A stretch of DNA of 64,000 nt. Source: Orbicella franksi (taxonomy: Eukaryota). The notes under the pieces are model-generated. The model did not search any database and was not told the DNA's origin. It worked only from the letters and a program-made list of their open reading frames with translations. The first letter of the stretch is position 1. Each line of letters starts with the position of its first letter. Below are positions 278 to 5,379 of the stretch, piece after piece. The position numbers and the translations under genes were made by a program. The stretch spans positions 33,108,001 through 33,172,000 of the forward strand of contig OZ116702.1 in assembly GCA_964199315.1 (NCBI GenBank), in the 5' to 3' direction.

Positions 278-3200
278 GTTGCCTCCCATCTTTATTTTCC
301 CCAGAGCCACTCGTTTTGTCAGTCTCTAAAATTAGAACGCCGAGCACGTGACCAAAAAAGAGGACTCTAAGAACGAGAATAGCATGGAGGCACTTGGGTC
401 AATTTTCGCTGAGTATGTGCCGCTCGCCTCTCGAAACCCCTGATCCATTACATTCTGTGGCCAATTACGAACCCCATCTTAGTCAAATGTAATTTTCGCG
501 ATCCCAACCTAGTCACTTTGTGTTTATGCATCTACCTTATGAAGCATATTAACTAGTTCATCCTAAAATAAAGTGACACATTTGTTAAACTGAATGTAGA
601 GCGGTAGCAACTTTTTCACCCCGAATCTTCCCATTTTGAAATCTCTACTTGAAATCTCTTACACCCAAAAGTGCGACCCCATTCTAGTAACTCTATTGAA
701 AATGCCACCCCATTATAGTCAATCCAGTCGTGAAAATGAAAATGAAAATGAAAAGAATCGCCTTCAATCAACTTACCCGGATTATTTACGCACTCGTAGT
801 TCACATCCAGGTATTTGTTTGCGTCAGGGCACGCGTCTCCAAACACGCCGTTACTAGCGAGCAAATTACAGTCCTCCAAGCCATCACACTGTCTCTTCAC
901 TGTCTCATACGCTCCAGGCGTGCGACACATGCCGGAAGGCATCGGATTAGCTTCTTTCAGGCATCCCACATCACCCGTATCACCATAATCAGCGTTTAAG
1001 ATTCTTATCCTCTGCTCGGGCGGGCAGGAGATTTTCTGGATCGTGTCTTTGCATATGACAGTCCTTTGAGACGGCGATGAGTAAACTCCGCTTTGACGAG
1101 CTTAAGACAGTATTGTTAAAAATGTAGTACTATCTGGCTCAAATTAACATTTATTTAAATGCTTTTTTAACTTTAATTTATTTTCCTTCATTAGATACGT
1201 GATCTGACGAATTAGACTAAAGAGCCTTGTTCTTCGTCAAATCAAACACAACCCATTAAGATTTGGCCTGAACGCGTTTTCCCGCGCGGCTGCCGGTTTT
1301 CCCGCGCTTGACAATCATTCCATGTTTTTATTGCAGTTTTGATTGGTTTAATAAGTGTGTCATTTTTGCTTGTTTTGTTTGGCCAGAGGCAATAACTTGG
1401 CTATTATGATGACATTGACTGAAACCAGGAACTTTAAAACCTGTCAAAACCCACTGAAAAAAAAGATATGATCACAGAACAACTTCTTACCATTTGCTAG
1501 ATAAGATAAGGCTTTTTCCTCTTGTTGGTCTTCAGCGTATTTTGTTTGAGCTTCTTTCATTTGTTGGGTTTCATCAGGTGGTGGTGTATCATCGTCTTGC
1601 ACGGTAGAATCAGTAGCTTGTTTGTCGCTATCAGCTGGTGGTGGAGTCTCGGCGTTGATGTCTTCAACATTTTTAACCTGTTCAGGCTTGCTTTGTTCTT
1701 TATCAGCATCTTCTTCTTCTTTTGGAGCTTCTTCCTCGACTTTCTGGGCCGAGTTGTCTTGCGGTGGAGCCTGGACGGCTTCCTTTGGTGGCTCGCTGAC
1801 GAGCTTCTGCGAATCGCTTGCTGTCTTCTGATCCTCGCTTTCGCCTTTTACAACAGTATCGTTGTCTTTGCCCTGTGACTGGGTGACAGGCGCTTCTGAA
1901 TGGCTACCAGAAGCTTCTACGTCGCTAATTGGTTGACCGCTTGCGGGTAGCTCTCCACTTGACGCAGCTAGAGCTTCTTTGACGTCATTATCAGTGATAG
2001 TTACGTCGTCATCGTCGTTAGCATCATCATCGTCATCTTCATCATCGATTTTATTATCACCTCTATCCCCGTCATCTATGACGTCATCCCCTGATCCTGC
2101 CTTGTCTTTGTCTAAGTTATCTGGCAGAATAGAGGCATAGAAGTTTAATGTTAGACCCGACACTCTCGAAACAGCGAACTGAAATCAACACTACTGTTCG
2201 TTTGTTTCACTAAAGTTTAAAAATATCAGGTTAACAGTATGGTTAAATGTATCAGGTTAACATTAGGCAGTTGTCATGGCAAACCTTTTTAAGATCAACA
2301 GTAAAGGTATCAAACGTCATAACTCAAGTTTTGTAATTTTATTTCAGCGATTGGCTCAGTCAAACTGTAATTCTGGTCAGCACATAAACTCAAAAGAGTG
2401 ATTGTCAACACTGTCCGTGAAAAGAAGGAAAGTCTTTCGTTATTTACGTTGTGAGCAGTTTACTCTGATGTAGACGGTAACGTCATCCTCTGTCGTAGTG
2501 TAGTCTTTTCAGTCGTGGCGGCTGAAGTGTGCTGTAAGAGAGGTGTCCTTGTCGTTGTTGTACCGCTCTGTAGGCTAAACTGTCCGTCATTCCTTGAATG
2601 ACTGGTACATAGTTTCTTTGATGAGTTTTCAGTTTCGGGGTTAGTCTGTTGGAGTTGTCTTCTTCAATTTCTGTTTAGTCACTGTACTGAGTATTACTTC
2701 TTCGTAGGCATTTCCTGTCAGTAGCAAAGGCGCAACGGCGACAAGACCAAGAAATCCCTCTGTAAGAACGATTAATGCCTTAGTTTAAAATGATTCTATG
2801 AATTTGTATCGTTCCTCAAGTTTTTCGCTGTACCTAGATAGTGATTTTTTTTTGTTGTTAAGGCAATGAGCAGGCAACAAACAGAGTTGACCTGGACCTC
2901 ATTAAAACCCCTATTTTGATTCGTTCTGCTTGTTAAACTGCATCTCTTTTGTTCCTAGGGGTAAGGGCATCTGGCTTAATACAAAGAACTTTGTAAACGG
3001 TGCAAGTTGCCCCCTAAACACTGATAGCCTAACTTTATGTCATGAACTTTCGCATTTTGTATGTAAGCCGAGTTTCTTGGTCTAATCGTGCCGCGTACTC
3101 ACCACTTACCTTCCCGTAATAAACCAGCGAAGTACAAAGCTGATTTGTAAATATCAAGAGCTTGTTTCCTTGTCAAGTTCATCGGTAGACCAGGCAATGG

Positions 3201-5379
3201 AAACGAGGGAGGCTTAATGCGGTCATTGTGCGTGCCAGCTAACATGAAGGCCACATTAGAAGTATCACCATTTAAATCTTCATCGTTGTCACCACTTCCA
3301 CTGACACTAAATTCCTTTGATTCTTGAATGTCAGCGGTAGTATCATCAGGTTCATCAGATATGACGTCAGAATCGTCAAGTCCAGACCCCGAGCCAGAGC
3401 TTGGAATATTATCCGCCGGAAGGGACTGGATCCTAGGAGATGTGCTCTTTCTGGCAGGTTTCTCTGGGAGTTTCCTTTGTATAGTTGATGGCATTGGCAA
3501 TAACGTGTCGTCATGTTTATTGTAAATGTGATTTTCACTTTCTTTCATTGTCATTGGCACGGACCAATTCTTATCCAGAAGTATTGGAACTCGATCACGA
3601 GGTTCTTTGTATTGTTGCGATATTCCCGGATAACTAACTTGGTAACCATGGCCTGCTGAGTAACCGCGCCTCCACTGCTGTTGCTGATAGCTTGGGTATC
3701 CTGAATAGCTAGAATACTGTTGGTAGTTAGGTCCCTTGTGACCGATCGGTTGCTGATAATTTTGATAGCTTTGGGCATATTGGTTAAGTGGAATGAATCC
3801 TGTCCTTCTAGGCTCGGCCGATAGGGACGAAATGGTTCCATAGGCATTGATATTTTTTTGACTGTAGTGGTTGGATACCGGCAGATTTTGGCGGTAAATT
3901 GTATCTTTCCTATCATAAGTCAATGGCTGCCTGTAAATATTCGTGTAGAAGCCACTCCGGTCTTCATGAGAGGTAGGACCGTCGTTTAAAGAAGTGGGGA
4001 ACATTGACGCACCAGTCTGTTCCCTGTTTGTCAAAAAATTAGAAGCTGGCTTCGTGACGTTCGGAAAAGTTGCCGCCTGTCGGATTCCCACCGAAAAATT
4101 TCCGGTCAGTTGGTTTCCAGCCGCTGGGTTTCTGGCGGGAAAATTTCCGGTCAGTTGGTTTGCAGCCGATAGATTTCTGACGGGAAAATTTCCCACCTGA
4201 TTTCCGCCCGGTGATCTTCCCGCCATTTGGTTTGCTGCTGATGGGTTTCCCGCCAATAAGTTTCCCCTATAACCAATCGCCGTAGGAACATATGATCTTC
4301 GACTATTTTGACCGTTTATTTGATGCTTTTGTGTGGCGCCTCTCAACTCTGCCGTATTGTTCACATTGGTTGTGTTTTGTGCCACTGAACTTTGATTCAT
4401 CGTGTTGCCAAGGGTTGTCACAGAGAGAAATGATCTTCGAATGTTTTGATTATTATCTCCTGTATTTACTTGACTCAAATTCCGTAGCTTTTGAGCTATC
4501 AGGTCGAATATACCTTGATATTTGTCAATATTTTTGTCTGCGAAGAAATCAAACACTTTCAGACATGTAGTTTTTTAACGTTAAACACGCGTTCAACAAT
4601 ATAAAGCCAGTCTGGTCGATAGTGTAACAGCTTTCTTGGAGCTTGTATATATTAACAACAGAGACAAATATTAAAGTGAAGAATGGTATATTAAACGATA
4701 AGATTGCTGTAAAACACTTCGGACTGCGAAACACCACAGCTCTTTCAGTGGTGAGCTTAAAGTATTACTTTTCGCTACTGACTATCGTGTGTCATTGAAA
4801 GTGTTTGTTTGGAGAATTTGCCAGTACATCAAGACAATACACTTTATAGTTGATCGTTTCGCTTCTTGTCACCTGTCTGAAATATGATTGACCTTACAAG
4901 AGGAAGTAACGCCTGGGTTTTACTAGCAAAGCAGACACAAGCAGAATGCAAGCGCAGCGTGAGTGCAAATGCCCGCGCTGGCGCTCGTTTTCATTTTCCA
5001 CATACCGATCATGCTACGCTTATTATTGCGTTTAGATGTTTGGTCAAACAACCAACGAATAAAGACAAACAACTTTCACCGTTAAATTTGTCTGGGAAAG
5101 AGAGAAAGAGGAAAGATTACTTGTTGATTTTTAAAATCCGTGAAAAATTTTGTCCAGGATTGTCTTAAAACTGGTTACAATGCGAAAATAGCTAACCCCA
5201 TAAGAGAAGCTATATCAGAGTGCAGGTATGTGATAAACGTGCAAATACAAGCACATGACCTACTATGAAATGTTCTTACCTCCTTCTATTGGCATGGAAG
5301 AGGACGGTCGAATTTGAAAAACCAAAATACAAAATCCTAGGAAAACACTGAGCGTCGCAAGAAATCTGAAACTATACAT
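278..5379 (-). CDS. Multi-exon secreted low-complexity/acidic protein with SUEL (galactose/rhamnose-binding) lectin domain; continues beyond the left window edge
   Basis: Hand-spliced exons (minus): 5280-5379 (MYSFRFLATLSVFLGFCILVFQIRPSSSMPIEG, signal-peptide-like), 3110-4537 (N/Q/G/Y-rich then S/D-rich), 2698-2759 (weaker donor AA|GTAATA), 1491-2178 (D/E-rich), 777-1100 (TVICKDTIQKISCPPEQRIRILNADYG...CDGLEDCNLLASNGVFGDACPDANKYLDVNYEC, SUEL Cys pattern), 278-325. All junctions are GT-AG with compatible phases (1,1,0,1,1). Confidence 0.75.
728..756. repeat. (GAAAAT)n microsatellite in intron
   Basis: gtgaaaatgaaaatgaaaatgaaaagaa. Confidence 0.75.
777..1100 (-). CDS. Exon encoding the SUEL/Gal_Lectin rhamnose-binding lectin domain
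   Basis: Symmetric phase 1-1 exon of 324 nt, acceptor TCTTAAG|, donor |GTAAGT. Contains the A.YG, C.G...C and FGD.CP...KYL.V.Y.C hallmarks of SUEL domains. Confidence 0.9.

Follow-up and report, generated by a model that had tools for sequence, protein, structure and literature searches.

Which proteins are made from the locus at the start of the 64,000-nucleotide (nt) stretch of the Orbicella franksi genome analyzed here (contig OZ116702.1, positions 33,108,001 to 33,172,000, our G000:C5:33108001-33172000, hereafter the window), and might any of them carry a glycosaminoglycan (GAG)? For window positions 278 to 5379, an initial annotation had described 1 gene of at least 880 codons encoding a secreted lectin-proteoglycan. 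We found that the locus is one transcription unit conserved in stony corals, on the minus strand, from which at least 2 protein forms arise via alternative promoters. Transcription starts at approximately window position 5500 and ends about 3.6 kb past the window start, in the adjoining stretch L004 (G000:C5:33098001-33108000). Exons were rebuilt from splice consensus and then compared with RNA joints, orthologous proteins, and L007, a relative's locus used for comparison. RNA from 2 contig runs (X1 and X2) and raw reads including those of run X24 was placed on G000:C5:33107001-33113000 (window -999 to 5000). Exon 1 lies outside these 6 kb and was recognized through the unaligned letters of the contigs by exact-match search. 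The RNA runs containing the gene are labeled as coral metagenome or as coral species. The features of the unit are, in the order of transcription:

5380..5496 (upstream limit approximate), minus strand: 5' untranslated region of the main transcript; an X2 contig has 217 letters past the exon 1/exon 4 joint, 100 coding and approximately 117 upstream
5280..5379, minus strand: exon 1, with the ATG at 5379 and the signal peptide MYSFRFLATLSVFLGFCILVFQIRPSSSMPIEG, phase 1 end, GTAAGA donor (RNA contig, orthologs)
4620..4652, minus strand: possible internal transcription start, tentative (TATATA at 4646-4652; RNA contig ends at 4620 and 4637)
3110..4537, minus strand: exon 2, alternative, a 476-codon (1428-nt) disordered block rich in Asn, Gln, Gly, and Tyr, phase 1-1 (homologs, ratio of nonsynonymous to synonymous substitution rates (dN/dS), models)
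3099..3109, minus strand: GTAAGT donor and in-frame TGA (3099-3101); the unspliced exon 2 frame ends here with ...LLREGKW and the stop
1491..2120, minus strand: exon 4, acidic disordered region, phase 1-1 (RNA joints 5280 to 2120 and 1491 to 1100)
777..1100, minus strand: exon 5, SUEL-type domain (rhamnose-binding lectin (RBL) fold), 8 Cys, phase 1-1 (Pfam, RNA joint)
1..776, minus strand: intron running off the window (joint from 777 to L004 8910)
386..739, strand not assigned: dispersed repeat within the intron following the lectin exon (genome copies)
L004 9384-9453, minus strand: alternative first exon with the second signal peptide MRSLFINVFAFFVSFALLNVVYA (RNA joints)
L004 9216-9275 and 9012-9113, minus strand: small exons of the short form (RNA joints)
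L004 8872-8910, 7814-7888, 7398-7619 (8-Cys motif), and 6381-6709 (stop TGA), minus strand: shared downstream exons (RNA joints, orthologs)

The main mRNA consists of exon 1, the acidic exon, the SUEL exon, and the four downstream exons, and encodes a secreted soluble protein of 572 amino acids (aa). In an X2 contig with a depth of 578 that ends at the 2120 acceptor, the letters beyond this end match exon 1 from window 5282 onward; the main mRNA thus passes from exon 1 straight to the acidic exon, leaving out exon 2. The 1491 to 1100 joint was detected in an X2 contig with a depth of 318 and in X24 raw reads, and 4 raw reads ending at 777 continue at L004 8881-8910, an exon located 1.9 kb farther on. 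The same L004 8910 exon is entered by 20 reads from L004 9012, and further joints run from L004 9384 to 9275 and from 9216 to 9113, which together indicate a second 5' start. The form initiated there starts after the lectin exon, is 298 aa long, and contains only its own signal peptide and the shared Pro/Cys-rich tail, without the lectin. If exon 2 is included in the main form, the joined exons give an open frame of 1048 aa. In the 572-aa form, an acidic disordered region is followed by the SUEL domain, a Pro/Tyr-rich stretch, the 8-Cys motif, and a charged, Ser-Gly-rich tail, in which a Lys-rich stretch (KSQPKSKKATLTAHKKAHNK) precedes the acidic, Ser-rich end. The mature main form has an isoelectric point (pI) of 4.28 and 18% of Asp plus Glu residues (D+E), and in the acidic exon these values are 4.05 and 30%, with the Asp run DDEDDDDDANDDDD. 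Secretion is supported at the sequence level: hydrophobic cores are located at the N-termini of both the main and the short form and are kept in the orthologs, and no membrane-like segment was found besides these N-termini in the predicted forms. The gene is well expressed in adult colonies.

All exons, including the alternative first exon, are present in L007 in the same order. The dN/dS values against this locus were 0.04 for the SUEL exon, 0.09 and 0.13 for tail exons, 0.21 for the acidic exon, and 0.35 for exon 2. Exon 2, the acidic exon, and the SUEL exon have phase 1 at both ends, and exon 1 ends in phase 1. Orthologs of the main product, which were retrieved with the Acropora model as query, have the same architecture. 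The Oculina patagonica protein XP_078376496.1 (570 aa) is 83% identical to the 572-aa form, and the set further includes Pocillopora verrucosa XP_058963617 (549 aa, from a cluster of 67 members, most of the listed ones from Logan assemblies) and two transcripts, one from JGI (589 aa) and one of the Acropora type from Logan (558 aa). These 4 proteins keep exon 1 and have the order signal peptide, acidic region, SUEL domain, Pro-rich stretch, 8-Cys motif, and tail, without exon 2. All named homologs are from stony corals, and both major stony-coral lineages are represented (Acropora and Montipora in one, Pocillopora and Oculina in the other). In RefSeq and GenBank, members of the family are named 'uncharacterized', 'hypothetical', or 'Latrophilin Cirl', and a literature search with the accessions, SUEL plus coral, and skeleton proteomes retrieved no paper describing it.

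Several parts of the initial annotation persist in this structure. The signal-type N-terminus (ATG at 5379, hydrophobic stretch in exon 1) was confirmed, and the region rich in Asn, Gln, Gly, and Tyr corresponds to the 476-codon open exon at 3110-4537. Four of the proposed exons are real, but the model also contained 2 spurious ones, lacked the 3' half of the gene, and treated exon 2 as constitutive when it is alternative. Likewise, splicing with matching phases holds for the real exons (phase 1-1) but fails for 2698-2759, which with its 62 nt breaks the frame. A single gene of at least 880 codons as main product was not recovered, because the RNA contig that passes from 5280 to 2120 skips exon 2 and the orthologs of 549-589 aa do so alike. 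The junctions at 2698-2759, for which an RNA check had been proposed, were searched in the RNA and no joint was detected there.

Both spurious exons, placed on the minus strand, are rejected as intron. The segment 2698-2759 is 62 nt long, would put the acidic exon out of frame, and has zero RNA joints; it falls outside the blocks conserved in L007, and the orthologs go from ...YFAGLLRE straight into the acidic exon. A 60-nt variant of this exon keeps the frame, but its peptide is unconserved and rich in Cys and Arg. The segment 278-325, from which the motif DKTSGSGENKD had been taken, is skipped, since 4 X24 reads run from 777 to L004 8910; the aligned L007 stretch does not contain a matching open frame, and the segment is present in no ortholog. 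For exon 2, an acceptor at 4555 would also preserve the phase; 4537 is favored by the Oculina model and by the onset of protein conservation.

What kind of domain does the conserved SUEL exon encode? The lectin domain named in the initial annotation was borne out by a Pfam search, in which 777-1100 clearly matched PF02140 (E = 1.2e-19, 70.9 bits with a cut-off of 31.4, profile positions 1-80 of 80) and contained 8 Cys. The orthologs also pass the PF02140 threshold, and this profile was the sole match in the gene product and in the 570- and 891-aa orthologs. The SUEL fold is certain; any specificity for a sugar is putative. The closest relatives in the PDB are the rhamnose-binding lectins 5h4s and CSL3 (2zx0) and the RBL domains of latrophilins. 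The 8 Cys have aligned counterparts in CSL3 and SUL-I and are invariant in 6 orthologs; in RBL domains they pair as 1-3, 2-8, 4-7, and 5-6 (PMC3269628), and for the coral protein these bonds are predicted only. In CSL3, rhamnose or galactose is contacted by Glu7, Asn74, Asp79, Lys86, and Gly83 via its main chain (PMC3269628), of which Asn74, Asp79, and Lys86 are kept here. The rhamnose binding implied by the initial annotation is not borne out, because the position of the sugar-binding Glu of CSL3 is occupied by Lys or Gln. The family motifs YGR and DPC-x-G-T-Y-KYL (PMC3269628) fail but are partly kept, as ADYGD and DACPDANKYL in all orthologs. The coral domain therefore shares with CSL3 (chum salmon) and SUL-I (sea urchin) the PF02140 match, the 8 Cys, the Tyr of YGR, KYL, and Asn74/Asp79/Lys86, but differs from them in having YGD for YGR, DAC for DPC, Lys or Gln for Glu7, and Asp for Gly83. 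Furthermore, those lectins consist of 2 to 3 tandem domains, whereas the coral protein has a single one inside a long disordered protein. The genome contains at least 97 SUEL matches, and the nearest paralog is only 42% identical, which indicates a single-copy lineage. Many of these matches are accounted for by tandem clusters of SUEL exons at G000:C6:26.99-28.71 Mb, G000:C5:33.92-33.96 Mb, and G000:C2:30.9-31.2 Mb, one of them less than 1 Mb from the window on the same chromosome.

The name 'Latrophilin Cirl', given to A. cervicornis KAK2570246.1, is rejected as a domain-transfer error, because PF02140 is the only Pfam domain and there are no membrane helices. The SUEL/RBL domain is all that the coral protein has in common with latrophilin/CIRL; GAIN/GPS, hormone-receptor, olfactomedin, and seven-helix domains are absent in the Pfam search, and so is a membrane segment. 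Four annotation pipelines have produced four differing models of this locus, with one ortholog misnamed in this way.

Inclusion of exon 2 is probably limited to minor transcripts or to those of other conditions, and splicing of this exon after exon 1 in this species is predicted. An exhaustive HMMER search yielded 13 strong homologs, all of them calls of the open reading frame (ORF) type and, where the species is named, from corals only. Their ends read G-[EK]-[WCFLY], a few codons past ...YFAGL[LM], because a phase-1 GGT-RAG-Txx donor (GTRAGT) is read through, and several of them begin with translated pyrimidine tracts ending in xAG. The acceptor and the donor of exon 2 are conserved in L007, which together with the dN/dS of 0.35 indicates that exon 2 is a selected coding block. 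The block has 9 N-glycosylation sequons, and in an AlphaFold2 model from 22 sequences of its end only 1 helix, the terminal one (RKQALDIYKSALYF), was confident. The ESM Atlas returned no cluster for exon 2, and for an ortholog only generic SUEL clusters, at 0.78. Protein models of other corals join this block to its neighbors in different ways. Exon 1 is joined to exon 2 (the equivalent of 5280/4537) in the Oculina GenBank model KAL9968243.1, beyond which a protein search found no other protein spanning this joint. Two models, Oculina XP_078376495.1 (isoform X1, 891 aa) and P. meandrina CAH3127000.1 (888 aa), begin at an internal Met of exon 2 and pass from this exon directly into exon 4. In KAK2570246.1 the signal peptide is joined to an inner part of exon 2, followed by the remainder.

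At the RNA level, exon 2 was detected only in contigs collinear with the genome, which cover window 1635-4620 in X1 and 2093-3998 and 4018-4637 in X2, with a depth in X2 of 31-47 versus 578 for the contig joining exons 1 and 4. One X2 contig stops at 4637 and continues with ACCCCC and the Illumina adapter, and in X1 the depth falls from 64 to 9 at 4620. Further upstream in intron 1 (4801-5000), the contig runs X1 and X2 both had a depth of 0, and the raw-read run X24 one of approximately 0.3. The contig ends and the TATATA tentatively suggest an internal start near 4620-4637; the TATATA stretch is not conserved in L007.

Two noncoding stretches of this part of the gene are also conserved. Window 5030-6195, which includes approximately 800 nt upstream of the ATG, shares 74% identity with L007, a level equal to that of the coding exons; a conserved promoter/enhancer is one possible explanation, an untranslated exon another. 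Between exon 2 and the acidic exon, the intronic segment 2388-2630 contains 2 blocks with 70-74% identity to L007 that are noncoding in every model.

Are the Ser-Gly motifs more than a reflection of composition? In comparison with composition-matched shuffles, SG dipeptides were enriched in the acidic exon (4 versus 0.77, p = 0.003) and in the last exon (4 versus 1.0, p = 0.009), and acid-flanked SG was enriched in exon 2 (5 versus 0.74, p = 0.0006), an overall enrichment of 4- to 7-fold. Conservation across five genera was seen for SGDD, AASSGEL, ASGQ, EASGS, SGAAEG, SESG, and, at the terminus, SSGDASSGSS. Among 22 homologs of exon 2, with a mean column identity of 40%, both acid-flanked SGSG motifs vary little or not at all. 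Of the 5 motifs quoted in the initial annotation as recurring, 4 are conserved in orthologs and so withstand the refuting condition that it had set, but DKTSGSGENKD does not, lying in the non-exon segment 278-325. Acid-flanked Ser-Gly is found in the cores of part-time and small proteoglycans such as syndecans and serglycin. Like such cores, the coral protein is secreted and has conserved SG or SGSG sites in disordered sequence near Asp/Glu and a hydrophobic residue, but its sequence is not homologous to that of any named core protein, and the chain is putative. The protein represents a new architecture around a known domain, and a proteoglycan reading of it is plausible. A GAG on the conserved Ser-Gly sites is the best single guess at their modification, one that falls well short of an even chance. 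According to the A. millepora skeleton study, SGxG occurs in most coral matrix proteins, with no such predicted modification demonstrated (PMC4043741), and the motif alone is therefore weak evidence for GAG attachment.

Within the gene structure described above, we consider it somewhat more probable than its negation that the product is an extracellular-matrix scaffold O-modified at conserved Ser-Gly. In such a scaffold, the acid-flanked Ser-Gly and SGSG sites would be O-modified, preferably by a xylose-initiated GAG, with phosphate or other O-glycans as alternatives, and the Asp-rich region would bind cations. Lacking the canonical Glu for sugar binding, the SUEL domain may dock to a glycan or protein partner, and the Cys/Pro-rich tail could cross-link the protein into the matrix. 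Promoter choice would then set whether the lectin-plus-acidic head is attached to the tail. Candidate matrices are the calcifying matrix, the surface or mucus, and the cnidocyst. A bolder proposal is that the locus provides core proteins of a stony-coral GAG matrix, in which three promoters would switch among three forms sharing the cross-linking tail: the acidic form with the lectin, a long form that has an additional disordered arm with SGSG, and the lectin-less form. Taken jointly, these elements make for an unlikely proposal.

Several observations weigh against the scaffold reading. GAG attachment would depend on a motif that is widespread in coral matrix proteins and was never verified there, and the argument from it is weak. 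Glu7 of CSL3 is changed to Lys (Gln in the Acropora type) and Gly83 to Asp, and lectin activity may have been lost given these changes. AlphaFold models of the region from the lectin to the C-terminus (6 sequences) were unusable, with a mean predicted local distance difference test score of 35, and add nothing. No experiment or proteome localizes the protein, and no publication on the family was found. Exon 2 is present in X1 and X2 only in contigs unspliced at both ends, which apparently start at approximately 4620-4637, and in the Montipora capricornis RefSeq model XP_068748296.1 exon 2 forms a protein of its own that lacks a signal peptide and has an end matching the unspliced exon 2 read-through. 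Two Logan contigs with exon 2 homologs, from other corals, are collinear with the genome and decide nothing.

Two other accounts of the gene structure concern the place of exon 2. That the locus is a constitutive gene of approximately 880 codons ending near 278, in which the signal peptide, the N/Q-rich block, both acidic regions, and the lectin are always present, agrees with the single strand and the compatible phase 1 of all blocks and with the Oculina and P. meandrina models joining exon 2 to the acidic exon, as well as the Oculina GenBank model joining exon 1 to exon 2. However, the main RNA form skips exon 2 (X2 depth of 578 versus 31-47), the transcript-derived orthologs of 549-589 aa lack it, 2698-2759 and 278-325 are unused, and four more exons are located outside the window; as stated, this account is already refuted, and we give it next to no credence. 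The N/Q-rich block might instead be a nested single-exon gene in intron 1, with a promoter at approximately 4630 and the stop TGA at 3099-3101, that never forms part of the lectin gene. This would explain why the X1 and X2 contigs are unspliced through both block ends and why they break off at 4620-4637, in one case with adapter letters, and it is in line with the zero depth of intron 1 farther upstream in X1 and X2, the common end of the ORF-type homologs a few codons past the same point, the stand-alone model XP_068748296.1, and the 2 collinear Logan contigs. Yet the block has no conserved start codon or signal peptide despite its 9 N-glycosylation sequons and SGSG motifs, and the last codons are GGT-RAG-Txx in every homolog, including the E/K swap, which fits a GTRAGT donor better than a C-terminus. 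The residues ahead of the conserved start are translated pyrimidine tracts ending in AG, both block ends are in phase 1 as in all other exons, three annotation pipelines splice the block to neighboring exons, and the putative promoter is not conserved in L007. We therefore find a pair of separate genes improbable and retain a single unit with an alternative exon 2.

With that structure retained, 2 more specific functions compete with the O-modified scaffold, each of which we rate as a minority option. The product might be a calcification protein of the CARP/SAARP kind, with the Asp-rich region binding calcium in the calcifying space and the Ser residues phosphorylated or carrying small O-glycans, without a GAG. 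The mature pI of 4.28 and 18% D+E pass a looser definition of 'acidic' (more than 14.5% D+E and pI below 4.5, 10.64898/2026.03.24.713908), the acidic exon contains the Asp run noted above, and both the restriction of the named homologs to stony corals and the strong expression in adult colonies would fit. Like CARPs, SAARPs, and acidic skeletal organic matrix proteins, the coral protein is secreted, with Asp runs and a pI near 4. On the other hand, its D+E content is under the classical CARP bound of more than 35%, the acidic exon has few S-x-E kinase motifs, and the protein differs from this group in its lectin domain and Pro/Cys tail. Nor was it seen in the skeleton proteomes, as far as the covered parts go: among the 36 matrix proteins of the A. 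millepora paper the only 'lectin' in those parts is of the MAM type, with no SUEL (PMC4043741), and the terms SUEL, rhamnose, and latrophilin are absent from the one supplement searched of a three-species skeleton-proteome preprint (2026). A role in the cnidocyst similar to that of nematogalectin, in which the lectin head would bind capsule chondroitin and the Pro/Cys tail would be cross-linked into the minicollagen wall, carries comparably little probability. Nematogalectin has a signal peptide, a Gly-X-Y collagen-like domain before the gal-lectin domain, and a basic, Lys-rich tail (PMC4195985), and the coral protein resembles this scheme in several points (PMC4195985): an intron follows the signal peptide, a separate exon encodes the SUEL domain, a Lys-rich stretch lies close to the C-terminus, and one gene yields alternative forms. 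Its shared tail has polyproline runs and the 8-Cys motif, and the next gene downstream, on the same strand, encodes 2 minicollagen-type Cys-rich domains around a polyproline core. Gly-X-Y collagen-like sequence is absent, however, the longest run being 3 triplets in any isoform, and the protein is therefore not a canonical nematogalectin; the acidic region before the lectin and the long Pro/Cys-rich region after it also set it apart. The minicollagen pattern CX3CX3CX3CX3CC is missing from all three isoforms, the isoforms arise by alternative promoters and not by an alternative lectin exon, and the closest SUEL paralog in the genome is, as mentioned, only 42% identical. The named homologs are from stony corals only, and no sea anemone or hydrozoan homolog was found, in a lectin-form search that low-complexity words hampered. 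The nematocyst link is only a lead, and the O-modified matrix scaffold is the reading that we retain.

The neighborhood of the unit contains 2 further features. The downstream gene consists of two exons (L004:190-984 and 1591-1685, minus strand, G000:C5:33098190-33099685), is located approximately 4.7 kb downstream of the stop, and encodes a secreted protein with minicollagen-type Cys-rich domains at the N- and C-terminal ends (CGPCSVTSCAPSCPPACC and CPPPCVMSCAPSCPVSCC) in which CX3CX3CX3CX3CC occurs twice. Between them is a polyproline/His-rich core without Gly-X-Y, and the protein has an acidic Lys/Glu tail with DDGSGED. The predicted product looks like a CPP-1/minicollagen-like protein of the stinging-capsule wall, and this Cys-rich neighbor is a hint towards the stinging capsule. 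The repeat at 386-739 recurs across many chromosomes, in at least 50 partial copies with 67-82% identity, and is absent from the same intron of L007.

Acidic sulfated glycoconjugates are present in the coral skeleton matrix and chondroitin in stinging capsules, and we know of no core protein that has been tied to either the skeletal glycoconjugates or the capsule chondroitin. The family described here is a concrete candidate for such a core protein, being well expressed and combining invariant GAG-type motifs with a lectin-fold domain. Should the product be an ordinary glycoprotein, the value of these results would be limited to a corrected gene model. If the GAG-matrix proposal is true, the locus would equip corals with a lectin-proteoglycan that can be tuned, for use in the stinging capsule or in the calcifying space.

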